Assembly (NCBI RefSeq): GCF_016433145.1
Contig: NC_058131.1
Coordinates: 601,381,775 to 601,445,774, forward strand
Length of the DNA stretch: 64,000 nucleotides
Origin: Gracilinanus agilis
Lineage: Eukaryota
Reading direction: 5' to 3'
Numbering within the stretch: the stretch's first letter is position 1; every line of letters starts with the position of its first letter. The position numbers were made by a program, and so were the translations under genes. Below are positions 25,407-49,070 of the stretch, piece after piece. The notes under the pieces are model-generated. The model saw nothing but the letters and a program-made list of their open reading frames with translations. It searched no databases and had not been told where the DNA came from.

Positions 25407-26570
25407 ATGGCTGTACCACAGAATATAAATGAACCTTCAAATTTACCACCTCTGAGCAATGGCTGTGATGAACAGTCAAGACTCTCGGTTGGGCTGGGAG
25501 TATTAGATTTTGTGTATCGCCAGGAGGAGCTGAGAGTGAAAGGGATACAGTGGCAGACTAGTGAGTCTGGTGAACTGTGTCCCCCTTTGCTGTCTCGCTT
25601 TGATTGTGTCCTCCAGTCATCTTGGAAACAACGGATGGAACAAGGATTGTTTCGTTACTGCCTTGGGGAACTGCAGACCCAAATCCTACCTGGCCCTCTG
25701 GGTTTTGTGGCTCAGCTGAATGTGGAGCGAGGTGTACAGAGAAGACCCCCTCAGAACATCCAGAGTGTGAGGCAGGCATTTGACCCTCAGCAGTTCCATT
25801 TCAATAAGATCCAACCAGGAGAAATCCTCTTCCACCTGTGCCGAGATCCAGGCTTTCCAATGGCTCTCCAGTGCACTGAGGTCCTGGTAATTATCAATGT
25901 CAGTCCCTTGGAATGGGGACATGTGCTTTTTGTGCCAGAGCCCACCCAAGGGCTACCACAGATTCTCATGCCAGACCCATTACAATTTGGGATAGAGGCT
26001 GTCATGCTTAGCACTCACCCAGGCTTCCGTGTGGGCTTCAACAGCCTAGGTGGCTTGGCTTCTGTCAACCACTTACATCTGCATGGCTACTATCTAGCCC
26101 ACAAACTGCCAGTAGAGACAGCTCCAAGCCAGCCACTAGATCCCAATGGTCATATCCACCTACTAGAAGGACTCCCAGCCCCTGGCTTCCTATTTTTTGT
26201 TGATGAGCCAGGACCAAAGTTGGAGGCATTGGTAGGCAGGGTCTGTCAAGTCACCAACTACCTGGCTGACCAGGAGATTGCACATAACTTATTTGTGACC
26301 CGAGGGGCCCCGCCTGGAAACCCACCATCCTCATTGACCTATTCTGGTATCCGGGTCATCCTTTGGGCCCGGAAGTCCAGATTTGGAGTTAAGGAAGGGG
26401 AGGCTTTCAATGTGGCACTTTGTGAACTGGCAGGACACCTTCCTGTTAAAACTTCCCAGGATTTCCACAGTTTGACTGAAGCTTCAGCTGTGAATCTCAT
26501 TCAGCAATCTCTCCTGCCTCCATCCCAGTTTTTACAACTTCAAGAAGCTCTGGTGTCCCTCCTGGAATAG
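25407..26570 (+). CDS. GDPGP1: GDP-D-glucose phosphorylase 1 (387 aa, single coding exon; HIT family, VTC2 homolog)
   Basis: ORF 25305-26570 with true start MAVPQ at 25407 after acceptor 25353; HIT motif [36 protein letters not shown]. Confidence 0.96.
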
Positions 26571-27379: not shown

Positions 27380-28150
27380 AAGGAGCCTTTACCCAGGCCT
27401 GGGCTCTTCCCGCCAAAGTTCGTTAAGCAGCCAGGGCCGCGAGTGCTCTGATGATTCATACAATGAGCCGCTTCAGGACCTTCGTGACGTTCTGGAGTTT
27501 GGCTCCCTAGAAACTATAAGTTCTAGCGTGCATTGTAGGCAGTTCGGAAGGAAGACTGGGTTCGCGAGGCGGTAGCTTGAGGCCCCTTTGTTGTCGCGAC
27601 GGCCCCGAAGTTGAGGTGTCTTTCTGCCCCGCCTAAGATGGCCGCGGCGAAGCCCAGGGTGGGTGTGGCTGCAGGGAAGAGGCCCCGCCCCTCCAGAATG
27701 CTTCTCCAAGGCGTGTCCATGGCGACGGCAGCGGTGGCGGCGGCGGCGGCGCTGCGAGCCTGTGGAGGCGCCGCCGCCGCCGGGGTCTCAGTGCTAGGTG
27801 AGAGCCCCGGGAGGGGAGCCGGCTCCCCTCCCGATCAGCAGGATCAGCCTGTCCCCTTGGGCGAGGTGGTCGACCCCCATAGTCGGAAAGACTAGTCGAG
27901 CGCTGGGCGAGGGGAGGGGCTGAGTGCTCGGCCAGGCCGCTTCTAGGCTCTAGGGGGCGCAGCAGCTGTGCCGGGACCGCCCCCCACCGAGGCTCTGGTG
28001 ATTAACTTTGTTTCAGCCCTTCCTATTAAAAATTGTCCGGCCCTTCCTCGCCTCCCCTGCCCTGGTCGGCCGCGGGGAGGCGCCCCACAGTCTCCGCTCC
28101 CTTTTTCCCAGCACTTTTTGGTCCCTGGCTCCCAGGAGTAGAGAGAGCGC
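27380..28150 (+). promoter_or_regulatory. TTLL13 CpG-island promoter with first exon ending at 27797
   Basis: ZNF143-like actataagttctagcgtgc (~27514), YY1-like aagatggccgc (~27635), GC box ~27681-27691, RFX X-box-like GTGTCCATGGCGAC 27713-27726, donor TAG|gtgaga 27797/27798. Confidence 0.7.
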
Positions 28151-28351
28151 GCAGCAATGGTCCCATCCTTCAGTTTGCAAGCAGGCGTCCCTCTATACAT
28201 ATCTGTCTACCTGAATCTATACCGTGTCCCTCTGTGTGCATATAGAGAAAGTAAGGCATGGGACAGCTGGAGACAAGTGTCAGAGCCAGGGCAGTCCTTA
28301 CTAATCCCTTGCCCTGGGTATTTTGCCTCTGCTGCAGAATCTAGAAGAAAT

Positions 28352-31300
28352 ATGGAGACTGCTATCAGCAAAACCAGTGAATCAGAGGAAGACTATGGCG
28401 AGGAAGAGGAGTCAGAGGAGGAAAGTGTTAAAAAGGCTACAGACCCCTCTAATGCTTCGCAACAGAGCAGCACAGAGGCAGGTGGGAATGGGGTCCCCGC
28501 TTCCACTGTCAAGAAGTCTCCGAAGAAAGTAGCAGCCCCATCTGAGCCAGAGGACTCTGATATTGGGAGGAAAAGGAGACGTCGGAAGCGAAAGTAATTA
28601 ATAGTTCCCCACAACCTCTCCGTACTTGCTAGGCTTCTGGGGATTTCTGTAGTAAGGTGACTTGAAATCAGCTATTTATCCCTTACCCTCTCTAGGGAAG
28701 TAACAGGGAAGACAGAAACCTAACTGACTTTTAATTTTATTATCTTTATTTTCAGAAGAAAAACTGCTTGAATACAATAACCATTTATTTTGTGCCCAGC
28801 ACTGAAATACTCCAGGAAATTGGTGACACAGATACTTGATTTGGGCTTTGAAGAGTGGATAGGAATTCAAAAGACAAAGGGGAAAAAAAGGAGTATTTCT
28901 AGGCATTGGAAATGGTTTGAGCAAAGTCTTGATTTTGAGTGGTGAGAGTAGCCCGGTTTCTCTAGAAGAGAGTTCAAGGGAGTAAAATTAAATAAAACAA
29001 GGAAATTTTAGTAATTTTAAGATTAAGGAGAACTTTAAATGCCAGGTAATGAGTTCAAGCTTTTTTCAGTTCAATTTAAATGCTTATCGAATTGAACTTT
29101 TAACTTTATTTGGTCCGCAATGGAGAACCTAAGGATTTTTGAGTAGATGTGTAGTGGGATCAGACCAATGCATAAGAAAGATTATTGTGACAGTGTTATG
29201 ATTTGAAAGAGGGGGGAAGACACATATTAAGGAGTTATTAAAATAGTCTAGACAGGTGGTGATGTGGGCCTGTCCTCAGGAAGTGATTAATGGTAGTGGA
29301 GGGATAGGTGGCAGATGAAACAAATGATGTGGCCATAGTAGAATTAACAAGCTTAAGTAACTAATTAGTTATGAGCAGTGATCAAATCTGAATTTTCCTT
29401 CATTGGCATTCTGGTCTTTCTCCAGTGGCTTCATTATTGGTAAAAGAGAATCACACAGATTTTGGTTAGCTCTTCAGGTGTCCTATTTGGAGACCACATC
29501 TACCCACTCAGCTACCCCAGGATTCAATTTTCCTATCTATCCTGTTTTAAAATTTCACTTGATTTCTTACCTTCCTCCATTGTAGGCTCCTGACTATCAA
29601 CCTGACCAATTGCAAGTATGAAAGTGGTAAGAACTTTTCCTTTTTTCTAAAAGAGAGCCTTCCCAGTATGCATATTGCTACTATAAATACCCATCATAGT
29701 TTCAAAAAGACATGGTCTGTTAGCAGTGAGCTTCCTTTTGTGGAACATAGTTAAGCTTAGAAGGTATGTTTCTACTAAGTTGTATTGGCTAACATCAGCA
29801 TTGGTTTATAACCTTGATCTCTTGGTATGCTTCAGCTTTCAAGGTCTACTGAATCATTCAATAACATTAAAGCAACTAAGTATAAAATACTGGGCTATTT
29901 ACTGGGGAAAATCCAAGAATGGTCTTTGACTTGTAAGGAATTAAATTAAGGGTTTGACTAAACATGTGAGAATTCTAAATTAATATTGTGGTTGCTGATT
30001 CAAAAACATTATAACCTAAGTCAAAATGATTTTTGGTAACTTTTATTTACAAAGAGGTGTGGAAAGAGTGAAAGTAGTGAAATACAAAAAGGAGGATAGA
30101 GAAAGATGTCTAACCTATCACACTAAGTATTGCTCCCAGTTTGGCTCAGCCCAGCAGATCTTGTTAACCCTCCAGGTCCTCCAAGCTCCAAATTCAGGCT
30201 GGAGACCAGTCTTAGCTGAAGCCTTTCAGGACTTTTTATAGTCACTTCTTGTCCCTTCCCCCTCTTCACAGGGGCCAATCACAGCTTCCAAATTGCCTAG
30301 CACCGCCCAGGGGGCAGTGTATATGGGATCCACTTCTCACCCTCTAAAAGTGTCAACTCTTATCAAAGGATTCATAAGTTTCTGGTTGATTAGGTTAAAA
30401 GGGTGGAGCTCTTCAAGTAAGTGACTTGTGAATTCTCTTACTTCTTCAAGTAAGTGACTTATGAATTCTTTTACTGCTTCAAGTAAGTGACTTGTAAATT
30501 CTCTTCTTCAAGTAAGTGACTTGTGAATTCTCTTACTTGATGGCTAACGAAGTGATAAATAGGGGTTAAGTTGAAAAATTAGACAAAGAGAATAAAGAAT
30601 TCCCTTTCACAGTCTTTTGCTTAAAGTGTAGGAGAAGAAAGGAATAGACAAGTAATTATAATACAGAATATAAATTTAAAAGAGAAATACAAAAAAAGGG
30701 ACATAGTTCATAGGAGGGAGAGGTCACCTCTAACTGAAACCATGGAAAACTTCATTAAGGATATGGTGTTTGACTTAAGCTTCAGTAAGCTCAGGATTTC
30801 ATCAGATGGGTTGGGGGGGGGGGGGTCAGAGAAACCATCAGCATAATAGAGATCTGCAAGTTTTCAGGTAGAAGTCATTGTTTCTTGGGGACAACTCTGG
30901 AGAATTAAGACTTAATTCACTGGTTGGGATAGGTCAGAGATGACTAAAGTTAAGCCAGGTTTTTTATTTCTGTGCTGCAGAAAGATCTTGCAAGTGAAAT
31001 GTTCTGGTAGAATAATCAACACAGGAGTATCATGTGTTAAAGTATGAAATACTCTTCCCCTCATCCTAGGTTAGATAATCTGCTCCTCACCCATAGCAAG
31101 TATTTTTATTCTTCAACATACTGAGATTTGGGCTGTGGCCATAGTCTCTTCTTTCTGTTCTCACATGGTATGTACCTTGAAGGTCAGGTGTCAGGACTTT
31201 TCTGCCTTTTCAGTTCGACGAGCAGCCCAGCTCTGTGGCCTGAAGGAAGTGGGGGAAGATGAAGAATGGACAGTTTATTGGACTGACTGTTCTGTCTCAC

Positions 31301-34300
31301 TGGAGCGTGTTATGGACATGAAGAGGTTTCAGGTATTAACTCCTTGGGAGGAAGAGTCCCTAAGGGAAGAGGACCAAGGTCCCATTAGAGTACCTACCCC
31401 CATAGGATAACTAGGAAACCATTTTTCTTCCTTTGTTCAGTACCTCAAAGATTAGAGTTTTTCAAAGAAGACCTCTTCCAGAAACTTCTGGAGAATGAAT
31501 CTTTGTTCACCAGGGATTCTGTACATCATAATGAGGTTTGAATGGGGAGACACAGAGAGAACAGATAGAGAGATGGATGAAACATTAGGCAAATACTAGG
31601 AGCCATGAAATATCAGTAAAGCATTTTGTTAACTTTTAAAATATTGCATAAATTCTAGCTATTTTTATTACATCCATCTTTACCTCTAAATCCAAGCATC
31701 TGTTTCATTTATTTCATTGTTTATATGTCCCAAATTATCACTCTACCCCTGTTCCCAATGCTTGGCATTATTTTTGGCACACTGAATACCATTTTCTCCT
31801 TAGATGATTGGTGGTATTATAAAATCCCTTTAGCTATGGTATTCTTTTCCTGTTTCCTTCTGAATTCATAATCTGCTCTGTGTTTTACCATATACTGACA
31901 GAACCAGTCCATTTTAGGACCAGTATATTGGAAGATGGCTAGAGGGACTAGAGTAATATATGTTAAAGGGATTATAATGGATCTAGGCCCCTTCACCAGA
32001 CATTCCCTAGTCTTATCATATGCTCTAGGCAGCATGAGTTCTTTTTTTATTTACTAATCTTTATTTTATTCCAATAACAAATTTATACATAAGTTTTCCA
32101 AAGTTACATGATTCATGTTGTCTCTCTCCCCCTTCCTGGAGCTCTGACAAGCAATTCTACTGGGTTATACATGTATTATCACTCAAAATATATTTCCATA
32201 TTCATTTTTGTAAGAGAATAATCTTATAAAACCAAAACCCCAAATCATATACCCAGATAAACAGGAGATAAGTCATATGTTTTCATCTGCATTTCTATTC
32301 CAGTAGTTCTTTCTCTGGGGGTGGATAGCATTCTTTTACATAAGTCCCTCAGAATTGTCCTAGATCATTATATTGTTGTTAGTTACAAAGTCTATCACAT
32401 TTAATCATCCCACAATATTGCAGTTATAGTGTATAATGTCCTCCCAGTTCTGCTTATTTCACTCCACATCAGTTCATGTAGGTCTTGCCAGTTCTTTCTG
32501 AAATCATCCTGTTCTTTATAGTACAATATTATTCCATCGCCATCATATGCCACAATTTGTTCAACCGTTCCTTTTAGTTTCCAATTCTTTGCCAACACAA
32601 AAAGCACAGCTATAAATATTTTTGTACAAGCATATCCTTTATGGGTTCTTCCTTTAGAAAGTTTCTGAAAGAGACACCTACCTTAAAGGACGTCTTCTCA
32701 TAATACTCTTGGGGCACTGCTCCCTTTGCTGTACTCTGTATCTGTGTTCTCACCATTTTCCTTTACTGCTTCTGCTAATGTCTAAATCTGGGGAGTTAAT
32801 GCCCACTTTGTTTAAATGAACCTGGCTGGCTCTGTCTTTTTCAGAAAATCAACCACTTTCCAGGAATGACAGAAATCTGTCGCAAAGATCTGCTGGCCCG
32901 GAATCTCAACCGCATGCATAAGCTCTATCCTTCTGAGTATAACATCTTCCCCCGGACCTGGTGCCTCCCTGCAGAGTGAGTGAAATTTGGCCTAATGTTG
33001 AGATAGACTGATGGTAGAATGTAGTTGTCTGTGCCCCTTTCAGACTCCTATTGCTATATCAGAATGGTACATGGGATAAAAATTAGGAGGGGAATTCAAC
33101 TGACCAAAGGAAAACTGATATGAGAATGGGTGTTTGAAGGAGGGTCACACAGTGAATAATGGGAAATGCTCAGAAGATCCTATGGGTGAGCAGTGACCAT
33201 GATGCCTTAGAAGCTTTCTGACCACTGCCACTGTGCCAAACAGCTATGGGGACTTTCAGAACCATGGACGTCAGCGGAAAACTCGTACTTATATCTGTAA
33301 GCCAGACAGTGGCTGCCAGGGACGGGGTATCTTCATCACCCGGAATCCTCGGGAGATCAAACCAGGAGAGCATATGATCTGTCAGCAGTATATATCTAAG
33401 GTGAGTATGATTTAGAATCCAGAACATTGGTCTCTCATAAACCCTTGATACTAGTTTTTTCTTGAAAAGAAACTGAATCTGATTGCATCTTCCTAGAATC
33501 AGTGGGAGGGGACTGGTTTGGGCACCCTTTTACTCTCCACTTTCCTCAGTTCTAGTTCCTACTGCTTGTTTCCCTCATGGGGGTCACTCTTTCTCAGCCC
33601 TTCCTCATCGATGGCTTCAAGTTTGATATGAGAATCTATGTCCTGATCACATCCTGTGACCCACTTCGTGTCTTCATGTATGAAGAAGGCTTAGCCCGCT
33701 TTGCTACCATGCCGTACATGGAACCCAGCATCAACAATCTGGTATGAGGACTTAAAAGGGATCCCTGAAATAGAAAAGTATGTATGTATATATATACATA
33801 CACTCAGCAGTGCTCTAGTGTTTCTCCATCCCCTTCTCAATAAGTCCTTACAACAATATTGTAACGACAGCTAGAGAAGCTAGGAAAAAATTAACTTTTA
33901 ATTCCTGCCTCATTTCAAGAAAGGATGCCAGAGGGAAATATTCATAATTTTGACTTGAGAATTTTTCCCAAAAGTAGTTTTGGGAAATGTCATAGTTGAA
34001 AAAAATAGCTTGAGGTGAGATGGAACCATTAAAGCTTTGGGTTTTTTTAAACCCTTACCTTCTGTCTTAGAATCAGGATAAGAATTGGTTCCAAGACAGA
34101 AGAGCAGTAAAGGCTAAGCAGCGGGAGTTAAGTGACTTGTCAAGGGTTACACACAGCCAGGAAGTGTCTTGAGACTAGATTTGAACCTAGCATCTAATGT
34201 CTCTAGGCCTGGTTCTCTACTGAGCCACCTAGCTGCCCCCATTAAAGATAAGTTTAGTAGAATTCAGTGTCATCCTCTTGACTGAGACCTCCTTTCTTCC

Positions 34301-37300
34301 TAGTGGAGAGTACCCAAGGAAAGGGAAACATAGAACTTAAATGAGGGCAGGGTCCTTTGGTGAATTTTAAAAGTCATTCGGGAACCCATGATATATGAGT
34401 AAAGGAAATATGGCAAAAACCTTGGGAAGGAGTGGAATGTAGGAAAGAGTGCAGGATGGGATTAGGAATATACCTCCTTATGATAACCTGAGAATACAGA
34501 ATTTGTCCTTTCACAGGACGATGTCTGCATGCACTTGACCAACTATGCCATCAACAAACACAATGAGAATTTTGTCCGGGATGAGACTATAGGCAGTAAG
34601 AGGTAATTCTCCTTTTATCTCCCCAACTTCCATTTTTCTCCTGCCCAGCCCAGCCTAGCCCAGCCCAGCCCTGCACAAGCACTGTGAAAGTCTCAGTTGT
34701 CCAGGCAATTGAGGGTCCTCTTTGGAGTCTGGTTTCTCTTTAACATTCAGGAACAGTTCTCCTATCTCAGGCTCTCTGGACTCTTGCCCATGAATCTTTG
34801 TCTCCAACTCAGAAATCATACTCAGATTCCAATCTTCCCTCTAAAGAGTAATTTTCTTTGAAACCAGAAGGGTATGGGGTTGGAGAGTCTCCTGCCTATG
34901 GCAAGACCCAAGAGCCATGGGTATTAGTCTTCTGAGTACTGGGTCTCACAGGAAGCTGTCAACACTCAATACCTGGCTGAGGGACCACAGCTACGAGCCA
35001 AGAGAACTGTGGGGGGATATCGAGGACATCATCATCAAGACTGTAATCTCCGCTCATTCCGTCCTTCGACACAACTATCGAACCTGCTTTCCACAGTATT
35101 TGGGTAGTGGTACTTGTGCCTGCTTTGAGATCCTTGGCTTTGATATATTACTGGACCACAAGCTGAAGCCCTGGCTGCTAGAGGTGAGGATAGTCCCCAG
35201 GATGTTGGAAAACCAAGATCAAGGGAACAGTCAAATTGAGACCTCTGTCCCTGGGTGAACCAAAGCAGTGAACCCCCCCTGGTCCAAGATATAGTCATGA
35301 TTTCTTTGCCTTGTCCTAATTTGTGAAATTTGCAGTGACCTTTATTACAACCTGTTTGTAGATTAGACAACATAGGTTTAGTCTATTCATCTTTAGCCAC
35401 TGAGAGAGATATCTCTGTTAATGATATTTCAGTTATCCCTAATTTATCAGCTGCAAATGATCACTAGCACTTTGGGGGGACTTAGGCAGGGGATAAATCA
35501 TGATTCTTCCTGATAGGTAAATCACTCTCCAAGCTTCACCACAGACTCATGCCTTGATCGGGAAGTGAAAGATGCACTTCTTGGTGATGCCATGAACCTT
35601 ATCAACTTACGAGGCTGTGACAAAAAGAAGGTGCTAGAAGAAGATAAGCGGAGAGTTAAGGAACGACTTTTCCAAAGTCATCAACAGCCACGAGAATCCC
35701 GAGAATCCCGGTATTCTGATGTTTTTTTGTGTACAGTTATTTATGTCTGTTAAACCATGAATTTAGCTTACCCCATTGTTTTCTTTCTAAGAGTAGAAAT
35801 TCCTAGCAGGCAGGCACTGGGTCTTGTTTATTTCTTTTTTTACAGTTTGGCACAATTAATAATTTCTGATGATAAAGCTTAGTAACACAGAAAACGAAGC
35901 CATGAATGATGCTGCTGCTATCCTGAAACATAAAAAGTAGCAGAACATGTGTTTTCTGGTGTACCCTTTGTATTGGGGAGGAAAAACTGTCAAAAGCTAA
36001 GTAGATTGGCACTGTTACAATAAATAACTTCAGCTGTACCAACTGTGGATGAATTTATAATCTCAACTAGGATTGGATCACAGAGGGGTTTTCTGTTAAG
36101 AAGCACATTGGTCTGGTTGACTTGAAGTTATCTTTGAGGTGGTTCTGACTAAAGTTTCAAAATGACAAGTTGGAAGTTGGGGAGAAATGCCTTTCAGGCT
36201 TACACTCTGAATCAAACTCTCTCTCTCTCAACCCCACCCCTTCTCTCCCCTTAACTAGGCATGATTCCTACAAGCGAGAACAATTGGAGTCAACAAATGC
36301 GGCATTGCTGGATCAAGAGAGGTATGAGAACTCCCACCTAGGTGGCTATCGACGTATCTACCCTGGGCCAGACACTGAAAAGTATGCACCATTCTTCAAG
36401 CACAACGGCTCCCTTTTCCAGGAGACTGCTGCCTCCAAAGCCAGGGAAGAATGTGCCAGGTACATTGCCCAATTTAACTTTCATCTTAAACTTCCAAATA
36501 GAACCCCAGGTGATTTTAACTAACACAAACTTTTTATTTTCTTCTTCCATTTTCTGATGCTTATTGACACCTAGTTCCTTTCCAATGGCCCAGCATTCCT
36601 GGTCACCATTTCCAGGATCGGTTGTACTTTCACTTATACTCTTCCCAACATTCTTTCACAGTTCTTGGCTCATATTGGGGAGTCAGAATATTCCTTATTG
36701 TCCTCATTACTACTTATAATCTCCCTCTTTCCCAAGCTTTCAAGCTCTCTTTTGAGGTTCATTCAATACATAATTTATCATCAAATGAAGATTTTGGTAT
36801 TTGTTATCTACCCAGCCCCCTTAGACATTCTCCCTCTTTCCTTAATGAGTTCAGTATCCTGCTCTATGATCTCTCTGTCCTCCTCAACTACTGCCCCTCT
36901 TATTAGGGGAATTATCCATATTGATATATCTGCAAACACCCTAATTTCCTTAATTTACTAATTTCCCATTACCTGCTCCCCCACTTTAGCTATAATATAG
37001 AGATGGGTCATTTTTTTGATCTTGTCATCACTAATAAATGTTCACTTTCATGTTCAGGAACTTTGAAACTCTTTTATTTGAACATAGTTGTTTATCATTC
37101 CACCTTTCCATCAGCCTTACAATACCTAACCCTGTGAACCAAATCAATGATACATATATTGCCCTCTATAGAAATCCTGGTCCCCCTTATCCTTTCATCA
37201 GTCAGGCCTTGCCAAAGCCCCAATCTTGGATTATTTTCATTATCTACTGCCTTTGCCTCCTATTCATGTGCTACTGAAAAGACCTGTAGAAAATCAAGAA

Positions 37301-40300
37301 ATTTATGACTACAAATTTGTGTTGCTCCCACTCTGCAGCAAGGCAATCCTTTTATACTCCCCTAAACAACTAAAGTGGATAGAGCACTGGGCCTGGAAGA
37401 GTTCAAATTAAGTCTCAGACACTTACTAGCTGTGTTACTCTGGGCAAGTCACTCAACTCCATTTGTCTCAGTTTCCTCATCTGTAAAATGAGCTAGGGAA
37501 GGAAATGATAAACAACTCCAGTATCTTTGTCAAGAAAACCCCAAATGGGGTCATCAAGAATCAGACATTGATTTAAACAACTGAATAATATATATTCTTT
37601 TGCTTGGTAATCTCATTAGGTCCCATGAATTTAATTTTCCATATGCAAATGATTCTCTAACATTTTACCTGGCCCTAAATTTTCCTAACCTTCAGTATTG
37701 TTTCTTCAACTGCCTTTTGGATTTCTCAAACCATATGTCTTATAGGCATCTCAAACTAAACATGTCCAAAACAGAATCTTTCCCTTAAAATTCTCTCCTC
37801 TTCTATTATTTCCTTCTTCCTCAGGCTTATAATTTTTGTGGTATCTTCAATTCATTATTCTCATTTATTCTTGATATATATATAAAGTAATAAGACTTGA
37901 CAATATATATAGTCAAGTTTTATTGTTTCATCTATCACATCCTCTTTTCTCTGACATAGCCACAACTCTGATGTAGGCCCTTATCACCTTAATTTGGACT
38001 TTTGCAATAGCTTTTTGGTTGGTCTCCTTGACTCAAGTTTTTTCATACTCTACTTAGCTGCCAAAGTGATCTTCTTTAATTTTTTTTTCAGTTACACATT
38101 GAAACAATTTTGATGATTATTTTCTGACATTTTGTGATTGAGATTCAGATTCTCTTTTTCCTTCCCTTCCCCTCCCCAAGGTAGTAAGTAGTGTGATATA
38201 GGTTAAACCAGTGTTTTATGTAAGTGAGGTTCCCATTGGCTTTTTTCCCTCCTTTTTATCAATTCCCAGCATAGAGTCTCTATAGTCCATTCCTCCCACC
38301 CTCTATATTGCTCTAGTACCTGAGAATGCTTTGTCCTGCCAGGCAGCAACTGGAGGAGATCCGCCTGAAGCAGGAACAGCTTGAGGCCACAGGCAACAAT
38401 AACGTCAAGAAGAGGAAAGAAAATAAGGATGTCAACCAGGGTGAATCAGCAGGAGAGAAGACCAGGCCCAGAGTGGGGCCCAAGAGCCTGCCCTCTCGTC
38501 TGAGCTACATGAGGTCTAGGAACCAAGAAAAGCAGGTATCATTGGCTTTAAACTGAATCACAGAATCATTTTATTCAGAGAGCTGCAAGAGACTTGGAGG
38601 AGGTCATGTAGTCAAAATTTTCAATTTTACAGATAAGGAAACTGAGGAAAGTAGAAAGGTTAAATGATTTGCTCAGATGTCACCACAAATAAGCAGCAGA
38701 GATGGAAAGAGAACTTGGGTTTCTTGGCCTTCGTATCACTGCTCTTTCCGATATACCAGGCTCCCTTTTCAGTAGTGAAATTGGGGAGCACAGGAAGATT
38801 TTTAGGAATTCTAACAGAAGGAATATATACTGTCCTATATAAAATAAGTTTTAAACATCTAATTAATTTAGTATATTGAGCTTGGCCTCTGGAAGAGGAG
38901 ATTTCATCAGATATAAGAAAGCAACGAGGGAGGGACATTTAAATCAGAAGATAAACTTAAATCAAAAAACTTAATTTCCCCATTATTAAGGGAAAATTTG
39001 GGTATTATATGAGTAGCATGTTATATTGGAACTTAACAGAGAAAGCAGACAAGTTGAGTGGACAGCCAACCAACAAGGAAGATGGTATGGGAGGGGGGGA
39101 GAACAATGCAAGACCCATTAATATGAACATATTTTACTGCCAGTTTGGGGCCTTCCATTTATCACTTGTGTTTTCTGTAGCTGCCAACAGTACAGGTGGA
39201 CACCATGCAACCTCAAGATATTGTGGAGGAAGAGGAGCTGGAGCGGATGAAGTCCCTTCTCCAAAGGGAAAATCTTATTCGTAGTCTGGGTATTGTAGAT
39301 CAGCTTACCCGTTTGCTGCACCCTACTCAACGATCCCAGAACAAATTCCCTTCAAATCGGGTGAGAGCCCCTTCACACTATTACATAGCATGGGAAGAGG
39401 GTGCTGTAAAATGTGTCAGGGGATAATGCCATCAGTTGTTTAGTTCAGAATTGAGCCTGACACAGTTGCCCACATAAAGGCAACAGTAAAAATTAAAGCC
39501 TTACTAGCTGGGGCCTGAATGGGGGTAGGGGGTGGGGTTGGGTTGGGCTTACACTGAAATACAGTCAGGGATATGCAGTGTCACAGCTCATGAGCTAGCT
39601 GGTCTGGATAATGTTTGTTATTACTCTCATATTTGGAGAGGTGTGGGATATTACTACAAATACTCCTGCCACACTAAAATAAAATGTGACTGTCACATAA
39701 CTAAAGCCAAAGCCATAAGTATTTAAGTCCTCAGTGGCTTCTGAATGGCTTTTTCCAGAATTTCTGGGGCTCAGAGTCAGGACTGCTAAACAAAGTAGAT
39801 AGCCAGCTAAAATACCACATCTTTGGGCCGGGGGTAGGAAGTGCAACAAAAAACATTTAATATTGTTTTTAAATAAATACATATAATTGCAGAAAAATCT
39901 GCTTTTTGTGGCATGTTGATATTTTGTCAAGTTGTATGATTTACAGCAGTGGAACCAAACTCAAATAGAAATGGTCAATGGCCACATATTGACTTAGAAA
40001 AACACAAATTAGCATAATCTGAGCTATACTGTATTTTTATTTATTTTGTTAAACATTTCCCAATTACATTTTAATTTGGTTAGAGCTACACTAGGGACCT
40101 GCTAGTTTGATATCTCTGATTTACAATACAGGTTCAAATCCTCTGATGGACACTAATTTCAAATGCAGGAAAGTATAATTTTCAAGCTTTGCCTAGAATA
40201 CACCAATGCCTTATCTTGATTCCGTTAGAGACTACATGGAAAGATAAGTGGGTGGGTAAATTAGCAAAAAATCTTCTTTATTAGACCTACCTGAGTTGTC

Positions 40301-41955
40301 TACTTTTGTCAAAGCCCAAAGGAAAAGCAGGTTAAATAGTGTGGTTCTTCTAGAAGAAACAATTTTGGCCACCCATTTCTCCCCAAATCTTCTTCCTCCC
40401 AACAAAGGTAGTAAGGCATTACTCTTCTTTTAGGCTAGATTTCACCAGGACGGACTTGGCAACCGAGATGTGCAGTCTGTGAATTTCGTCCCTTTGTCCC
40501 TTCTAAGAGAAGGGTCCATCACAGAACTGGGTCCCAACTTCATACAACCAGTCCGGACTCACACATTCATCCCCAACATCTTGGGCCCATTGTCAAATAT
40601 GAGGGCAACCATCCCCCACCCCTCCCAGTGCCAGCTGCAGCCCAAGAACCTCAACTGGTTAGGTACCTCTTCTACGTTAGGTACCTCTTCTACAGGCAGT
40701 GGTTCGAACTCACTTACAATGAAGAAGTCAGGCAGACGTTATTTTTCCAGTGCCCGATGCAAGCATGAGAGCCGTAAGTACCCAACTATCTCAAATGAGA
40801 AATTAACAATAAAGGGCTCTTTGCAGCTCTTCCTAAATGTCTGGTTTGGCCACTCTCTTTCCCACTTAAGCTGCAGGGTTGTAGTCATCTCAAGTAATTT
40901 AGCCCCTCTCACCTTGTCTAGTTCTAGTAAATACCTAGATAAAATGCCTCAGCTAAAATCCCAAATCACATCATAGGGAATCTGCAGGACTATGGGAATA
41001 GGAAGTCCTTAGGCATTAGGAAAAGTGGTTTGTAATAACCACTGAGCACAGAGGAAAAGGCTCTTGAGGAAATTTCTTAAAAACTAAAGTAGCCTGTCAT
41101 TTAAGTAGTGGAATGAAAACATCTAGGTGAGGCTACAGAAATGTGAATTAAAAAGTCAAAAGTTAATGGGTATAATTACATCCAGGGCTAAAAGAATACC
41201 TCAGGTGAAAAGGGAGTCTTTTCACTTAACACAAAAAGTAAAATTATTGGGGAAACTTGGACTCCTTGCTCCTAGCAGAATTTGGATGATGGATGAAAGA
41301 AAATATATGGGTGCTGTAAACGTTTTTTCCAAATGCTTCTTGGGTCCCATATTCCCTATTTTGATAGGTGGACCAGGGTTGGGGAATGAAGAGTTTCAGA
41401 TTAACAGACCTGGAGTCATGAGCTTGAGCTCTACCATATCCTCAGGGCCCTATGTTTCTATTTTAGAGGGCCAAACAAACAGAAGGCTAGAAGCTATGAA
41501 CCGGGCATTGGCAGGATCAGTGCCACCCTCCCTAACCCCAAGGCAGGGCTACCTTCTGCACCCTGAGAGAGAGGCAAGTGATTCCTGGGCTGGCTGCAGC
41601 TTGCCCTCCATGACAGAATCCAGGCATAGAGCCACAACCCGGGAGCTGACTTTGTGTCCTGCCTCAGCACCCCTTCTCCAGCACTCTACTGCACTGGGTC
41701 TCCTCAACATCAGCAGCCACCACAGGTAAGAGGGGCTCACCTACCCCAGGGGGCTGAGGGAGTGTTACGGTTAACCACCAAGCTGCATTTAGTAACACTG
41801 CTGTGGGGGAAAAAAGGATGAGGTCACGAGAAATCGAGCGTCCCCTAAAACCCTTGGGTTCCAGGGAGGGCAGAAGGACAGCAGGCTGAAGAAAAGCGGC
41901 CGGGGCAGCACTAGTGCGAGCCTCCAGGCTCAGGCCCCCTCTGTCCCCCAGGTGA
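28352..41955 (+). CDS. TTLL13: Tubulin polyglutamylase TTLL13, intact ORF (840 aa)
   Basis: Exons 28352-28593, 29586-29626, 31214-31332, 32845-32975, 33244-33400, 33598-33741, 34517-34602, 34952-35183, 35517-35710, 36259-36459, 38343-38535, 39181-39360, 40434-40773, 41467-41725, 41952-41955 (2523 nt). TTL motifs ICKPDSGCQGRGI, QQYI, KFDMRIYVL, HLTNYAINK, FEILGFDILLD, WLLEVNHSPS. Confidence 0.93.
29987..30585 (-). mobile_element. LTR-like element antisense in TTLL13 intron
   Basis: On the minus strand: U3 tandem repeat, CCAAT box (30275-30279), TATA CTATAAAAAG (30232-30241), AATAAA (30042-30047), TG...CA ends; no clear TSD, so boundaries are uncertain. Confidence 0.5.
30411..30538. repeat. 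Four-copy 29-33 bp tandem repeat (cttcaagtaagtgacttgtgaattctcttactt)
   Basis: Units at 30411, 30444, 30477, 30506. Confidence 0.95.
32040..32640 (-). mobile_element. Marsupial L1 3' end fragment
   Basis: tttttttattt...aagttttccaaagttacatgattcatgttgtc...cacaatttgttcaaccgttcc...tataaatatttttgtacaag. Confidence 0.85.
34034..34220 (-). mobile_element. SINE1_Mdo-like element, reverse orientation
   Basis: aaacccttaccttctgtcttagaatc...gagccacctagctgcccc; TSD-like attaaag. Confidence 0.88.
36560..38090 (+). mobile_element. Degenerate L2 ORF2 fragments (endonuclease region onward)
   Basis: Translation YLPSPLRHSPSFLNEFS resembles L2 endonuclease YRPPGHSPSFLDEFS; interrupted by a MAR1. Confidence 0.7.
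37385..37590 (+). mobile_element. MAR1 SINE
   Basis: gagttcaaattaagtctcagacacttactagc...aactccagtatctttgtcaagaaaaccccaaatggggtc. Confidence 0.85.
39947..40118. mobile_element. Old hAT-type MITE
   Basis: Degenerate TIRs cagtggaaccaaac / gtttgatatctctg with AT-rich interior. Confidence 0.4.
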
Positions 41956-43060
41956 TGGTCCAGAGCCCAGGGCCGGAAGAATGAACCCACTGGTCCTTGG
42001 AAATCAGCGAGCAGACGTTAACATCTGGGCCGAAAAGAGAGCAGGTGACTACTCCCTAGGTCCGACCTCGGACCCGAGCACAGCGCGTAGGAACACAGAG
42101 CCGGGTGACCGGGCGTGGGGCTGCCAGCGCTCAGGAGGATGTCGGCGTGCTGCGGTGTGACGTGAGGCCTGGAGTGCGTGCGCCGGCCGGGGTAGGGGCG
42201 CGCCGCCGCCGCCGCCTAGCGACCGCCCCTAACCGACTGGGGCGGTACCAGGGCAGCCACGGCCTGGGCCGAGACTTAGCTCTTTGCAATTGTATTCGTC
42301 TTTTTATTAAAGTTTTATAGCGTTTCCCTTCCTGCCTGTCACTTCCCCAGCGCCTCACGCTTCAGGGACTGGACTAGGGGGCCCTAAGCCCCTGAGCTGT
42401 TGTCCCCTCACCTGTCACTCGAAACTGGGCTGGGAACGACCCGACCGAACCCCAGCCTCTCTCTAGGACGTCAGGGAGACACTGGCACCAGGCCCCGGGA
42501 CGCCCCGGATTTCCTCCCGTCGTCCCGATCGCTCAGAGTGGAGCCAGCCCCTTCCGTTTCCTGTCCCGACGGACCGAACCGCTGTAGATGGCTCGGGTCG
42601 CATTCCTCCACTTCCTCCACATCGGTTCGGCCTGACTTTTCTGACGTCATGGCCGCTACCTCTAGCCTCTTGGCCATCTCGCGGCTCCTAGTAGCCGCTG
42701 CGTGGTCTCGGCTTGTGGTACGCAGCATGGCGAAACTGCCCGGAACCGGCCCGACCCTGGGTCCTGGCCCAGGGGACTGCGAGCACGACCCGGATTCGGA
42801 TTGGGAGCCGGAGCGGGAGCTGCAAGAGTTGGAGAGGTACCGAAGTCGCGGCTCTTGCCTTCCCCTCTCTGGGGGGGGGGTCTCCTCCCAAAAGCCCAGG
42901 GATCCCACTACCGTGTCTTGCTCCCCTCGGATTGCGGACCAGCCACGGCTTCCTTCCTCATAACGAGCGATGCCTCGGAGCAGCCTGGTAGCGGGAGGCA
43001 GGGTAGCGGAGGGAGGATGCTCGGGCAGCTACGTGATGGTCGACGGTCAGACTGATAGAC
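41880..43060. promoter_or_regulatory. CpG island covering TTLL13 terminal exon and NGRN promoter/exon 1
   Basis: CpG-dense; TGACGTGA 42158-42165, ETS cttcc motifs, full CRE TGACGTCA 42642-42649. Confidence 0.85.
42306..42311 (+). terminator. TTLL13 poly(A) signal ATTAAA (overlaps minus-strand AATAAA 42303-42308)
   Basis: AT-rich island inside the CpG island; upstream TGTA and downstream U-rich element. Confidence 0.6.
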
Positions 43061-46000
43061 TGACGGACTGTACTGACGATTCCAAGTTCAGATCAGCCAC
43101 GCTGTGTGAGGACTTGGCTCTGAGGAAAGACGAAGACCAAGTGATGAGAGGCCCCAGTTTTCGAGGGACCTGCAACGTATTCGTCTGTGGCCTCGACTTG
43201 TCCACCACCTCCCATAACCTGAAATCTGGTTCTCAGCCTCCTCCAGGACAGGATGTTCACCCTACTTTCTGGTCCTCACCGCTGCTTCCCACTCTAGAAG
43301 TAGCTAGTCTTCCTGTCTCATTACAGATATTTCCAATCTCTATATTTCTCCATCCTTGATGCTGTTGAACTCCCTTTAGAGGAGAAAGTATAGGTTTCTT
43401 CATAGGGGTACAGACTTTTTCACCTCCATTCCCTGCAATATTCAGGTGAGGACTTTGAAATTCTGCTTTTTTGGCCCAACTTCATTACCTTCCTCCATTC
43501 CCATTTCCTCTCTCACTAAAACCTACTCCTTGCGTTTAGTGATCACCAGTCATTTACCTATTCCTATTTTAGTTCATCTCTTCTACTTTGACTTCATTTA
43601 CGTCTCTAGGAAGCTGTTGCTAATAGCTATTATCCATTGCCTAACACTTTAATATTTTATAAATTAGTATTCTGTCCCAACCTGCAATTCCCCACTGTTG
43701 TTTCCAGGCTAATTACAAAATTAAGTTTATTTTAGCCACTAAAGATTTATGATACTTAACCTTAGCTATTGTTCAACAGCTCTTTCTGTGTCAGCTTCTC
43801 TGACTTCATTTTCATTGACTACTGCAAACTCCTTTTTCCCCTTCTGGCCTCAATTGTACTCCCACTTCCCATCCAGTTTCCTACTAAAGCAGAAAGATTA
43901 AAGCCATTCAGTGTCAGCTCTGTTTGTCCTCTCATTTCTCATAATTTGTCAACATCATAATTCCTTCTGGCCATAGAGTAAGGGTTATCCCTATTCCTCA
44001 TTAAGACTTGATTCTTCTACCACCTCCCTTGATCTTATTCCTATATTTTTTCCAGAACTTTGTGCCAGGAAATGCTCCCTTGTGTGTCATCATCCTTTTC
44101 TACTGGCACTTTCCCATCTACCTACAAATCTGTTCAGTCTCTAAATCCCTTTTTAAAAAAGTTTTCCTTTGACCCATCTTTTAACACCCTAACTTTTCAC
44201 TGATAAGATTCTGGAAAAAATTGTCTTCCTGAACCTGTCTCTTCTTCACTATCCACTTTGTTTACATCTTTATAATCTCACTTTAGCTCCCACACCATTG
44301 TAATTGAAAGTCCTCACAGGTTAACAAAGATTTTTCTAATCACAATTTTTTTTTTCAATCCTTGACCTATCTATAGAGCATTTGACACCATTGATATATG
44401 ATACTCCCTGATTTTCCTCCTGTGTTTGTTTTCAACTTTCTTGGATGCTTCTCTAAAACCTTTAATGTGCATATGTCCCCAAACAGCTATCCTCCTATCT
44501 CTTACCTTTCCTCTCTACATTTTTTTCCCCTGGGCAACATTGTTCTGCACCTTTGTGATTTTAATTAGCACCCCCTCTTCAGAGATGATTTACATTATCT
44601 CTAGCATCTGACCAGTTCTCTGAGTTCCAAACTCTACAATCCCCTTCTGGATAAATATTTTGAATTTCCCATGAGTACTATAAACTGAGCATTTCTAAAA
44701 TTGAGGTTACTTTTTCTGTCAAATGTTTTCTCCTTCTGACTTTATTGTTTTTGTTTGTGGCATCATCATATACTCACTTAAAATCCTTGGAATCTTATGA
44801 CTTTTCTCTCCTCTCACCTCTTATAACCAGTTACCAAGTCCTGTCAATTCTATCTCATGAACAGATCTCTTTGTTCCTTTATTCTCACTGTTACCTCTGT
44901 AGTAGAGGCTGTCCTTACTACCTTCTTGGACTATTAGTTACCTCTTAAAATGTTTATTTTGATGCTTTTGGTTTTCTATACTACAGTATGCTTCCTCATC
45001 CAAAGAACCCTTTCATTTAACAGAAATTATTTTTTTTAAGCAATCCAAATAATACAACTGCGTTTGATGACTTATGCAACATTTTATAACAGTAGCCTTC
45101 CATCACTTTACTGAGAGGAAAAGTACTGAGAACCAAAAATAATCAGTTCATTCTGAATTCAGGTGCTTTTTAGTGTTGTTTTCATTTACATATCACCATT
45201 CTCCTATTTTTACTTTGTATAGTTCATGCAAGTTTTCCTGTGTTATTCTGAATTCTTCATACTTATCTTGTGGCATAATGAATATAATGGAATACAATCA
45301 CATACCACAATTTGTATAAAAAGTGCTTCAAAAAGTGCTTTTATGAATATTTTGGCATAAAAGCAATAGCTTTACAAAAATCTTCCAACATCACTTCTCC
45401 AATTCATCTCTCTTATCACTGTCAGGATAATTTTATTTCTAGATCGTCATATCATTTTTCTGTTGAAAAATCTAAAATGGCTTGTGAGAGCCTAATGAAT
45501 AAAAAGTTCATACTCTCTTGTTTTGAATTCAAGGCCCTCTATGATTTGGTGCCACCCCTCTTTCCAAGGCTCATCCATGTATCACTTAGTAGCTAGCATG
45601 TCGATAGTCCTACCAACTGAGCAATTATCCATCTCCCTTCTAAAATATGCTTTCTTACCTCTGTATTTACTTATATTGTTACTTTTGCCTAAAATGTCTT
45701 CTCTTCACCTGTTGAATTTCTACTCCAAAGAAAGAGTGCTTGACTTGTAATCAGGAGACTTGGTTTCAAATATATGTGACCTTGGTCAAGTCACTTACTC
45801 TCTAGGTCTTAGTTTCCTTAGTTCGTGGTTAGACTAGAGCCTAATTTTAGTTATATACATGTAATCTTTGGATTGTAATTTAAATCCCAATTCAATTTCA
45901 CTTCCTACATTAAGCTTTTTTCCTTCCTGTCGTAGGTAACAACTTTGTGCTTCATATAGTACTTTATTTTACAACTCTTATGTATTGGCAACATGGAAAA

Positions 46001-48243
46001 AGTTCTGGATTTAGTGCTAGAGGGACTTTACTTTAAATCTTGGATTTGCCACTCATTACCTGTGATCATAAGCAAGTCACTTAAAATCTCTGGACCTGTT
46101 AAGTTCTTTCGTTTGTAAAATTAGGAGGTTGAGTTAGGTGACCTCTAAAGGTAATGTTTTTAGCATTCTTGTGCTAAATACAATCCCCTACTAAGTTTTG
46201 AGTTCCTGGAGGCTAGGTACTCTGTCTTAATTGAACTTTATTTCTTCTTAGTACCAAGCACAGTGTTGTGAAAGCACTTAATAAAGGTTTGCTGAATTAG
46301 TTAATGAATAGGGAAAATGGCAAAGAGATCCAAATCAATATCAGCATACAGCCATCTGTAGAGTGCATGGAGTCATCAGGGATGAGGCTGGAGTTCAAAT
46401 AAGAGAGCTTGTTCTTTCTGACTGGAAGAATCCTAGGGGGGAATTTCCATGGGGAAAATGGCATTTGAATTGGGTTTTGACAAATAGATAGAATTTCTAT
46501 AGGCAAAAGTAGGTAAAAAAGGGTATTTGAAATATAAAGAGCGGGTTCAACAAAGGAAGATACTTAAGTCAGTTCTGGATGTGCTTTGAGAGTCTAGTTA
46601 GCTATATAGCATGGGGTACCTGAAGTGGGGAAGTGAGTTGGCACCAGATCTTGGAGAACCTTGAAAGAGCCAGAAAAAGTTTGGGTTATATTCTTAAGGT
46701 TTTTTAGCAGGTTAGTGACCTGTGCAAAAAAAAAAAAAAATATGAAGTAGCTTGCAAAAATATCAGGATTCCAATAGCCTAGGAATTAGGGAGCAGAGAA
46801 ATATGATGAAGTCTGATTTAGAATTGAGCGTTAACAGGGCAATAGCAACAAAAGGCATGGGGTATTTAGGAATTCCAAAACAGGTAGCAAATGGTTGAAT
46901 ATTGGTTAATACAGACATCCAGACTGAATGGGGGAAACAAATGAAGCTAGAATAGGCAAGATAGATTGGAAAAATAGGGAAGAATTATGAAACTAGAGGT
47001 TTATAAAGGTGAATAGAAAACTTAGAAAGGTTGTAATTCATTATGGAGAGGCAAATGCAGATTCTCTCTACTTAACAGAATTAGTTAAACAAATGTCAGC
47101 TTGGTATTTATTGTACAAGAAATCATGTTAGTTTTTATAGAAATACAATTATTGTCCCTAATTTTTCTTAACATGTCTGGGTAGCTGTCTGGTAACCTGA
47201 TTGTGTGAGGTAAATAGTCCTGAGGCATGAAAGGAAATGGATTAGGGATTCCCAAAGGCAGTGCGTTGTTCTGAGGGTGTACCACTTAATTTGTCTTTTG
47301 CCATCTGTTGTTTTCATTCTAGATGTCTGAAACAACAGAAAAAACAAATTCTGTTCCAGAAAATTGGGAGAGAGATGATGGCCTCAGGTGCCCCACAAAG
47401 GATCCTGAGCAGGAATGCCATGGTGCAGATCAGGTAAGAACAATTATATTCTCTTGTGGAGTCTCATATCCTAAGAGTAAAAATCCTGATGAAAAACCTA
47501 AAGCTCCTCATAGCCAAGGTTAGGGTAAGGGACAGCTCTGGGGGACTATGGAGCTAAAACCTTTTAGGGCCTCAACCTATAGTTAGTCATTCCTTGTTGG
47601 AAGCAGCCTTAAAGTTGAGATTTGTGTATCCTGAGGCTGTAAATTTAGGTGATACCATGTAAGGTCCAGTCCATTTCTCCTCACTGAGCCAATTTGGTTG
47701 TGACTATTTATAAGCATCCTATTTTGTGCTTTCAGAAGTCTTATTCGTTCTTTAGCTACTGCTGTTAGGAATGAATTTTGCTGACATTCTTCACAGCTTA
47801 GAATCTGATCCATTCTCTCTAGGTATTTACATAAGGAATTCTCTAAGGATTGGTCAGTTTCCAGATTAGCTGAAGGCTTTGGAGTCAGCACTGATGTGAT
47901 CAGAAGGGTTTTAAAGAGTAAGTTTGTTCCCACATGGAAGCAGGAAATAAAACAAGATCAGAAGATTCTCAGCAAAACTAGGATCATCCACCATCCACAG
48001 CAGAAACTGACCTCACGGGAGCAGCCAATACTACCAGCTTTTACAGGTTACCTGGTCTCAGGATCTCGGCTAAAGTCAGGATGTGAGGCTCTGCCACCAT
48101 GTGTCCATCGAAAAGGCCAATATTACAATTCAACTTTACCAGAAATGGAGAGGAATTCTAAAGCTTGGAAAATCAAAAGAAGCCAGAAAGTTAGGGGCAA
48201 AGTATCTCAGAGATTGGGGAGGGAGAAGTGGGCTGGCTACTAA
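42649..48243 (+). CDS. NGRN: Neugrin (mitochondrial ribosome assembly factor), C-terminally truncated as assembled (239 aa)
   Basis: Exons 42649-42836, 47323-47433, 47823-48243. DPDSDWEPERELQELE, QKKQILFQKI, YLHKEFSKDWSVSRLAEGFGVSTDVIRRVLKSKF. Confidence 0.92.
43330..45720 (+). mobile_element. Degenerate L2 ORF2/3' fragments in NGRN intron 1 (L1 3' fragment on - at ~45020-45320)
   Basis: cttgacctatct...gcatttgacaccattgat resembles the L2 RT motif LDLS-AFDT-D; pyrimidine-rich L2 composition. Confidence 0.7.
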
Positions 48244-48363
48244 GTAAGGAGAAAGAAGAGGAGGTGGTAAAGAAACCAGAGACAGGTGGTGAGGAATTCA
48301 GCAGCAAAGTATTTCAGAAAGGGAAGAATTTCTTTGATAGCAAACTTTCTTTATAGGATCTGA
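48195..48363 (+). other. Out-of-frame remnant of the NGRN C-terminus (EEFSSKVFQKGKNFFDS / NFLYRI*)
   Basis: Matches the human FSSKVVQRGREFFDSNGNFLYRI but in shifted frames beyond the TAA at 48241. Confidence 0.85.
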
Positions 48364-48377
48364 GCAGGAATTTATCA

Positions 48378-48396
48378 TATATATGAGATTATATAA

Positions 48397-48427
<31 letters not shown>

Positions 48428-48450
48428 TACACACACATATATATATATAT
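48378..48450. repeat. (TA)n/(CA)n compound microsatellite in NGRN 3' UTR
   Basis: Read directly. Confidence 0.93.
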
Positions 48451-48694
48451 AAGCAGGAAGGAAGAACAGTGCTACAAGTTTGGTATTTTCTTTGTACCTG
48501 AATATATTCCCAAATTGCTGCCTATTATTTAGCTGTCCTGAATTGGGAAGTGCTGTAGTTCTTGGAGTAAGAGAATATCCATGAGATTCTGGACTTCCAT
48601 ATGCCAAAAATGGTAAGTCATGCATGGCAACTATATGATGGAAAAAAACTGTTGCTGCCTCTCGTTTCTTGATCTCTTGGCAATAGCCATTGAG

Positions 48695-48930
48695 GTGGTG
48701 CTATAGACAGAGCACTGGACCTGGAATTTGGAAGACCTGAGTTCATATCTCACTTAGACACTTTCTACTGGTGTGATCCTAGTTAACTCTTTTCTCAATT
48801 TCCTCATCTGTAAAATAAGGATAATAGTAGCACCTACTTTTCCTGGGTTGTTGTGACAATAAAATAAGATAATATTTGTAAAGTACTTTGCAAACCCTGA
48901 AGTGCTACATAAATGTTGTTATTATTATTA
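48695..48930 (+). mobile_element. MIR SINE, near full length
   Basis: gacctgagttcatatctcac...caatttcctcatctgtaaaataagg...aaagtactttgcaaaccctgaagtgctacataaatg. Confidence 0.85.
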
Positions 48931-49070
48931 AACAGTGCTCTAATTACAAAATTAGTAGAGATTCTGTAGAACAGATGTGCATCTTCAATTGAAGATTCTC
49001 TGAATCACATTCATCATTACTGAGGGGCTATCAAAGCAGAGACCCAGGAACTTTATCCATTTCATGTTAC

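Follow-up and report, generated by a model that had tools for sequence, protein, structure and literature searches.

The TTLL13-NGRN gene pair of Gracilinanus agilis and a phase-matched route to a possible read-through fusion

The TTLL13-NGRN gene pair

The window (the whole stretch of DNA analysed, 64,000 nucleotides of Gracilinanus agilis contig NC_058131.1) contains TTLL13, whose product is a TTL-family tubulin polyglutamylase, and NGRN, coding for neugrin, a mitoribosome large-subunit assembly factor. Both genes lie in tandem on the + strand with a short gap between them (TTLL13 stop at 41955, NGRN ATG at 42649). The gene order GDPGP1-TTLL13-NGRN is shared by the window, possum, wallaby, human and mouse. 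Positions of the features are given in Table 1.

Table 1. Features of the TTLL13-NGRN locus in the window
Feature	Position	Strand	Basis
TTLL13 coding region, first ATG exon (METAISK...) to stop TGA 41953-41955	28353..41955	+	tblastn, Pfam, RefSeq CDS
Last large coding exon of TTLL13 (259 nt), phase 2 end, donor CAG/GTAAGA	41467..41725	+	direct reading
CpG island over TTLL13 3'UTR, NGRN promoter and NGRN exon 1	41950..42950	.	base composition
TTLL13 terminal exon, one coding base and TGA, then 3'UTR; 3' end approximate, placed just past the poly(A) signal	41952..42330	+	spliced RNA contig
TTLL13 poly(A) signal (ATTAAA), 338 bp 5' of NGRN ATG	42306..42311	+	hexamer scan
NGRN exon 1 coding part, 188 nt (62 codons and 2 nt), phase 2, targeting-type N-terminus	42649..42836	+	RefSeq identity
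NGRN exon 2, 111 nt, phase 2 in and out; would-be acceptor of the read-through splice	47323..47433	+	RefSeq identity
Coding part of NGRN exon 3 with the Neugrin domain; stop TAA 48241-48243	47823..48243	+	Pfam, RefSeq identity
Remnants of the conserved C-terminus of neugrin, out of frame and 3' of the stop	48232..48363	+	tblastn, three-frame reading

In tblastn every TTLL13 exon is collinear with the possum model P0114, at 85-98% identity and without an in-exon stop. The Pfam TTL profile (PF03133) matches exon pieces at 33577-33744 (E 2e-18) and 34917-35150; both the TTL/ATP-grasp domain and the orthology thus identify the gene as TTLL13. Its RefSeq product in G. agilis has 769 aa, with a CDS end that maps to window position 41955. 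Read directly from the sequence, the last large coding exon terminates CCACCACAG/GTAAGAGG, and the donor at 41725 is in codon phase 2, as the sequence-only reading had proposed, in the frame of the ORF 41127-41729. The translation of this exon is 89-95% identical to its counterpart in wombat, Dromiciops, possum, glider, koala and wallaby. When the donor is joined to the acceptor at 41952, the reading AG/G TGA makes the product terminate with R and a stop. Canonical marsupial TTLL13 proteins finish ..HHR.

The translations of the three NGRN exons, with an R at each junction, reproduce the RefSeq neugrin of G. agilis (P0147, 239 aa) exactly; exon 1 is identical to residues 1-62 and exon 3 to residues 101-239. 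Exon 1 was claimed to end in AG/ in phase 2, and this is what we find at 42836. Its donor, GAG/GTACCG, is weak; the acceptor at 47323 is preceded by a long pyrimidine tract. Pfam Neugrin (PF06413) matches exon 3 with E 5.6e-28 and 98.5 bits against a gathering score cut-off of 24, the match spanning only profile positions 21-147 of 218. The conserved C-terminal motif of neugrin, ..FFDSNGNFLYRI, is absent in frame: the ORF ends at 48243, and the RefSeq protein likewise has 239 aa. Past the stop, a tblastn HSP of the neugrin C-terminus (48276-48341) lies in another frame than NGRN; when all three frames are read, ..FFDS stands in one of them and NFLYRI-stop is again in that of NGRN. Unusually fast evolution of NGRN in this species was considered and rejected, as its identity to australidelphian sequences, 66-75%, falls only a little short of the 74-78% between marsupial orders.

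In the interval between the genes, the ATTAAA at 42306 is the sole + strand AWTAAA from the TTLL13 stop to the NGRN ATG; its distance from that ATG, put at about 340 bp in the sequence-only reading, is 338 bp. The CpG island has a GC content of 0.64 and a CpG o/e of 0.80, against 0.16-0.36 in the flanks. An Rfam scan of 41000-49000, meant to account for odd run matches and an intronic contig, gave no match.

The splice route and the transcripts of G. agilis

Joining 41725 to 47323 skips the terminal exon of TTLL13 and the first exon of NGRN and keeps the frame, both sites being in phase 2. In the native frame of NGRN the joint is translated as ..HH-R-CLKQQKK, and the claim that the join introduces no stop holds on the sequence. 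The frame is open automatically, because the native frame of NGRN is entered. For two unrelated introns a phase match is expected by chance in one case out of three. The phase match is therefore real and statistically unremarkable. The length of the fusion, given earlier as about 1016 aa, is decided by the choice of 5' exons: it would be 945 aa with the 769-aa RefSeq product, or about 1010 aa by analogy with possum. We agree that the fusion would lack the mitochondrial presequence of neugrin, since NGRN exon 1 is skipped. In G. agilis its neugrin part would, in addition, lack the conserved C-terminal motif.

Splicing from an upstream gene's penultimate exon to the second exon of a downstream one is the textbook pattern of read-through chimeras, e.g. 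GALT-IL11RA (PMC6862657), and the route from 41725 to 47323 matches it. In conjoined genes (cis-SAGe) of the GALT-IL11RA type, however, the chimeric RNA has been shown by RT-PCR or RNA-seq, whereas the TTLL13-NGRN pair described here is competent by its sequence only. The gene arrangement is ancestral, fusion-competent and of a well-known read-through kind.

According to the explanation that we find fairly likely, the locus is an ordinary tandem pair, and a low-level read-through chimera arises as a by-product of proximity, with no dedicated gene behind it. TTLL13 and NGRN are intact and separately annotated, and the phase 2 of the last TTLL13 intron and of the first NGRN intron is an ancestral therian feature. 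RNA polymerase would run past the single ATTAAA, which is located within the CpG-island promoter of NGRN, and the strong donor at 41725 could then be spliced to the acceptor of NGRN exon 2 at 47323. The outcome would be a chimeric mRNA with the frame kept, as in read-through (conjoined-gene or cis-SAGe) transcripts. This splice should mostly lose to the acceptor at 41952, because that acceptor is strong and only 226 nt from the donor. By analogy with the models of other mammals, G. agilis probably produces small amounts of the fusion isoform, and we infer that the chimera is transcribed there. Its translation or function is unsupported.

The RNA data comprised four runs, as assembled contigs from small runs, with one informative run of 100 million letters. 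Run X20 yielded one spliced contig, in which 41657-41722 is joined to 41949-42196 with GT..AG borders and the cut shifted by +3. This contig represents the canonical TTLL13 junction 41725 to 41952 and agrees with the end of the RefSeq CDS. The contigs thus show the canonical joint, but not the fusion joint: none of the contigs of the four runs joins 41725 to 47323, an absence that is weak given assembled contigs of small runs. Nor does any contig in these runs link 42196 to the NGRN exons. The X20 contigs end at 42196 and none lies over 42267-43266; gaps in contig cover carry no weight. When public run assemblies were queried with the junction of the possum model for ORF fragments spanning it, all 75 of the 75 matches were NGRN-only. 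In the RefSeq set of G. agilis, TTLL13 and NGRN are annotated separately and no fusion isoform is present.

Fused gene models in other mammals

At least 13 mammals have RefSeq/Gnomon models in which TTL and Neugrin domains are combined, and public models with both PF03133 and PF06413 form ten clusters of 949-1255 aa. A TTLL13-NGRN fusion is thus already present in the public gene models of other mammals and is not new. The predicted junction, ..HHR/.LKQQKK, is used exactly in Trichosurus, Petaurus, Notamacropus, Macrotis and Dromiciops and, among eutherians, in Condylura (star-nosed mole); in all six, a single junction residue stands between the TTLL13 exon and NGRN exon 2. With exact-junction models in five australidelphian marsupials and Condylura, the expectation that the phase match is kept across therians was borne out. 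The human TTLL13-NGRN read-through model mentioned in the sequence-only reading was not found: the fusion-model matches included no human, other primate or didelphid entry, no fusion cluster was human or primate, and the name was absent from the papers searched. A literature search for TTLL13-NGRN or TTLL13P-NGRN read-through returned no paper on it; the four papers that name both genes merely give them as neighbours.

The marsupial models are XP_036590614.1 (Trichosurus vulpecula), XP_068954727.1 (Petaurus breviceps), XP_072474610.1 (Notamacropus eugenii, isoform X4), XP_074090163-6 (Macrotis lagotis) and XP_043840273.1 (Dromiciops). They correspond to the window in their orthologous genes, in the phase 2 donor after ..HH, in the acceptor of NGRN exon 2 and in the resulting ..HHR/xLKQQKK; moreover, those of possum and wallaby lie directly downstream of GDPGP1, as do the genes of the window. 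They differ in being predictions in other species, while the annotation of G. agilis has no such isoform, and in keeping the full neugrin C-terminus (..NFLYRI), whereas NGRN of the window ends about 70 residues short of this. In Dromiciops the model extends beyond TTLL13 and two NGRN exons into HD-domain sequence, apparently of a third gene, putatively HDDC3-like. Over the NGRN exons of possum and wallaby no model other than the fused one is listed.

Eutherian fused models (Zalophus, Callorhinus, Vicugna, Smutsia, Cricetulus, Galemys, Condylura and Dipodomys) also contain TTL and Neugrin, in 949-1255 aa. In most of them the NGRN 5'UTR and exon 1 are included by read-through, so that the presequence becomes internal; this is the form of the pinniped, alpaca and pangolin models. 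The Dipodomys model joins TTLL13 directly to NGRN exon 3. Identical loci go by 'neugrin' or by 'TTLL13', depending on the build.

These models could instead be annotation artefacts, with no fusion mRNA in G. agilis and a phase match that is coincidental and without consequence. Prediction may chain across reads of read-through pre-mRNA or across overlapping UTRs, or a fused protein may be propagated by homology. The run of the Dromiciops model into a further gene resembles a prediction chimera, and the varied form of the eutherian joins and the build-dependent locus names point the same way. So do the separate RefSeq annotation in G. agilis, the lack of the fusion joint and of a read-through contig in four contig-only runs, and the lack of junction-spanning ORF fragments in public run assemblies. 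On the other hand, species from three marsupial orders, annotated independently, share an identical junction, and several fused models are numbered alternative isoforms beside the canonical ..HHR isoform. Real spliced reads explain this recurrence and numbering more easily. Read-through chimeras between such close genes are also common (PMC6862657). We consider this explanation rather unlikely.

Interpretation of the locus

The fusion could also be a selected, translated germline protein, in which a presequence-less neugrin core has been carried on a polyglutamylase since the therian ancestor. The phase compatibility and the junction that marsupial models share with one eutherian model are in agreement with this, and the fusion stop lies in the last exon, so that the mRNA would be expected to escape nonsense-mediated decay. 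However, the phase match has its one-in-three expectation, each intron phase being set by the coding needs of its own gene, and the eutherian joins differ, so that no single fusion protein is conserved. In G. agilis the neugrin part is truncated at its C-terminus. Neugrin works inside mitochondria on 16S rRNA (PMC8067846), which would be unreachable without the presequence. No transcript, peptide or literature support for such a protein was found, and the suggested function, a link between glutamylation and ribosome assembly through a germline chimera, is unsupported. We regard this explanation as highly improbable. Marginally less credible still is its extended form, a therian-old, testis-expressed and translated chimera with an extramitochondrial neugrin core; in the possum lineage, an intronless NGRN retrocopy located elsewhere may have freed the parental exons for this use.

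A low-level by-product of the proximity of two ordinary genes, our favoured explanation, has little biological weight as it stands: read-through of close genes is frequent, and the fusion is already modelled in many mammals. It is of use for annotation, since the TTLL13/NGRN locus is prone to gene merging, and the possum and wallaby annotations call for caution in use. Were the chimera shown to be abundant in testis and translated there, it would represent a rare conserved conjoined-gene protein and a hint of a non-mitochondrial role for the neugrin fold.

Gene arrangement and the proposed splice route

GDPGP1-like, TTLL13 and NGRN genes lie in tandem on the + strand of the window. The sequence-only reading proposed that the TTLL13 donor at 41725 can be spliced to the NGRN exon 2 acceptor, giving an in-frame fusion. 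All its coordinates and phases are correct as read in the window sequence, and the phase match on which the splice route rests is confirmed there. Since the terminal TTLL13 acceptor gives AG/G TGA, the terminal exon contributes one base and the stop, the remainder being 3'UTR. This 3'UTR and the poly(A) site lie within the NGRN promoter island, as the CpG island spans them.

Features of the TTLL13-NGRN locus (window positions; / marks the exon boundary)
Feature	Position	Strand	Details
TTLL13 coding region	ATG exon 28353 to stop 41953-41955	+	tblastn with the possum TTLL13-NGRN model P0114: all exons found, in order
TTLL13 exon pieces	33577-33744 and 34917-35150	+	Pfam TTL matches
Last large TTLL13 coding exon	41467-41725	+	3' end CCACCACAG/GTAAGA, codon phase 2
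TTLL13 terminal exon	acceptor 41952	+	AG/G TGA; acceptor preceded by C/T-rich tract
TTLL13 poly(A) signal ATTAAA	42306-42311	+	sole + strand AWTAAA ahead of NGRN
NGRN exon 1	ATG 42649 to 42836	+	188 nt, phase 2, donor GAG/GTACCG
NGRN exon 2	47323-47433	+	111 nt
NGRN exon 3	47823 to TAA at 48243	+	Pfam Neugrin match, E 5.6e-28
CpG island	41950-42950		GC 0.64, CpG o/e 0.80

Two further observations concern the upstream part. A CpG-island exon (27720-27797 and 28340-28352) codes for MATAAVAAAAALRACGG..VSVL ahead of a GT donor, and the N-terminal extension of the sugar glider and wallaby TTLL13 models matches it, so this is a putative alternative first coding exon that would make TTLL13 about 30 residues longer. 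At 25305-26570 there is an intronless 421-aa ORF (counted from GTG), in the place held by GDPGP1 (387 aa) in possum and wallaby; it has no match in the local Pfam copy, and the precomputed matches of the orthologues are GDPGP1_N and GDPGP1_C.

The public annotation of Gracilinanus agilis keeps the two genes apart. RefSeq neugrin (P0147, 239 aa) equals window exon 1 + R + exon 2 + R + exon 3, residue for residue, and the NGRN CDS spans 5595 nt in the RefSeq assembly as in the window. The RefSeq gene directly upstream, in the place of TTLL13, ends at window position 41955, and its longest recorded product has 769 aa and no Neugrin domain. Hence the annotation takes the canonical TTLL13 stop and contains no fusion isoform.

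Fusion models in other mammals

A search of 1.8 billion representative proteins with the NGRN exon 3 peptide gave one long match, Dipodomys ordii XP_012867320.1 (949 aa), in which TTL and Neugrin domains are both present. When the Neugrin part of this protein served as the scored region, which restricted candidates to fusion-size proteins, ten clusters (949-1255 aa) containing both domains were found. They represent alpaca, sea lion, fur seal, giant pangolin, Chinese hamster, star-nosed mole, Pyrenean desman, kangaroo rat, brushtail possum and bilby. Further fusion models among the cluster members came from sugar glider, tammar wallaby and Dromiciops. The ten clusters included no fusion from human or any other primate, such as the human read-through model named in the sequence-only reading. 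Queries in all searches were individual window exons or public proteins. The name TTLL13-NGRN was not found in the literature searched.

Alignment of single window exons to these models revealed the predicted junction (e.g. ..SHHR/ALKQQKK) in possum, glider, wallaby, bilby, Dromiciops and mole, where a single junction residue (R) separates the TTLL13 exon end ..HH from the start of NGRN exon 2. The C-terminus of the canonical TTLL13 isoforms in wombat, koala and wallaby is ..HHR, as in the window. The same junction occurs in marsupial and mole models, and the phase match is therefore ancestral to therians. In contrast, the models of pinnipeds, alpaca and pangolin continue through the NGRN 5'UTR and exon 1, and the Dipodomys model joins TTLL13 straight to NGRN exon 3 rather than entering at exon 2. 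Public annotation already contains models of the fusion, but not in a uniform form.

Over the NGRN exons of possum and wallaby, no gene other than the fused model is listed, which means that the annotation pipeline merges both loci. The Dromiciops gliroides model (XP_043840273.1) passes from TTLL13 through NGRN exon 2 and a portion of exon 3 into HD-domain sequence, which we take to be HDDC3-like; this model looks like a chimera of three genes produced by prediction. The parental possum NGRN exons are annotated solely within the TTLL13 fusion model. An intronless gene of 927 nt encodes the Trichosurus vulpecula 'neugrin' XP_036620705.1 (308 aa). As this gene and the TTLL13-linked NGRN exons lie on different chromosomes, it is a retrocopy with an intact ORF.

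RNA evidence in Gracilinanus agilis

Four sequencing runs, all in the form of assembled contigs, were placed on 41467-47466; one of them, RNA run X20, carries the organism label of the run containing the whole stretch. One spliced X20 contig joins 41657-41722 to 41949-42196, which after a +3 shift to GT..AG is the canonical 41725 to 41952 junction, and an unspliced contig (41809-41970) crosses the terminal-exon acceptor. The joint between 41725 and 47323 was not present among the contigs of the four runs, where X20 has only 100 million letters, contigs lose rare forms and silent filtering is possible. Likewise, in the assembled contigs of X20 at this size, none covers NGRN exons 1-2 or links 42196 to NGRN. 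The X20 contigs confirm canonical TTLL13 splicing, and a minor fusion stays compatible with the contig data. That Gracilinanus agilis makes no fusion RNA at all, the models elsewhere being prediction artefacts, we consider rather unlikely.

NGRN intron 1 harbours a 595-nt X20 contig (46399-46993, 100% match) of word depth 15, exceeding the depth of the TTLL13 exon contigs (2.7-4.8), while NGRN exons 1-2 have no contig. Rfam gave nothing in this interval; the contig could stem from a transcribed repeat, a retained intron or an unannotated transcript. For 41467-42836, the share of sampled words present is exactly 0.30 in each of more than 20 runs from other coded organisms, a few as small as 22-56 million letters. 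Despite this share, three of these runs (X1, X23, X24) had no sequence placeable on 41667-43266. An index floor or silent filtering may lie behind this.

Read-through as the probable source of a fusion

A fusion transcript could arise by the standard read-through model: the lone non-canonical ATTAAA lies 338 bp ahead of the NGRN ATG, within an active CpG-island promoter, and the strong donor of the penultimate TTLL13 exon together with the strong acceptor of NGRN exon 2 would permit the join. GALT-IL11RA resembles the predicted case in its exon join, second-to-last exon to second exon (PMC6862657). Database models of orthologous loci already contain the fusion, and events of this kind are known. 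Because an excellent acceptor just 226 nt from the donor must be skipped, only a small share of the product should be fused.

The neugrin portion of the predicted fusion is C-terminally short in Gracilinanus agilis. NGRN here has 239 aa vs about 308 aa in other marsupials. Remnants of the conserved C-terminus follow the stop in two frames (48180-48370): one frame carries ..KVFQKGKNFFDS, and the other, again the NGRN frame, carries NFLYRI-stop, with about 40 residues missing between. Either genuine decay or an error in the assembly may account for the shortening.

The interpretation in the sequence-only reading is partly supported: on paper the splice route exists, and it agrees with the orthologous public models; the functional reading is speculative. 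Neugrin is a mitochondrial factor required for 16S rRNA stability and assembly of the mitoribosome large subunit (PMC8067846). The predicted fusion protein lacks the neugrin exon 1 sequence, and a presequence-less neugrin attached to an enzyme of the cytoplasm or axoneme is implausible in this mitochondrial role. Two introns match in phase with a 1-in-3 chance and the phase of each intron is set by its own gene, so that conserved compatibility is no evidence of selection on the fusion; a selected TTLL13-NGRN fusion protein is highly improbable. TTLL13 and NGRN are probably separate genes, with the fusion as a minor read-through by-product.
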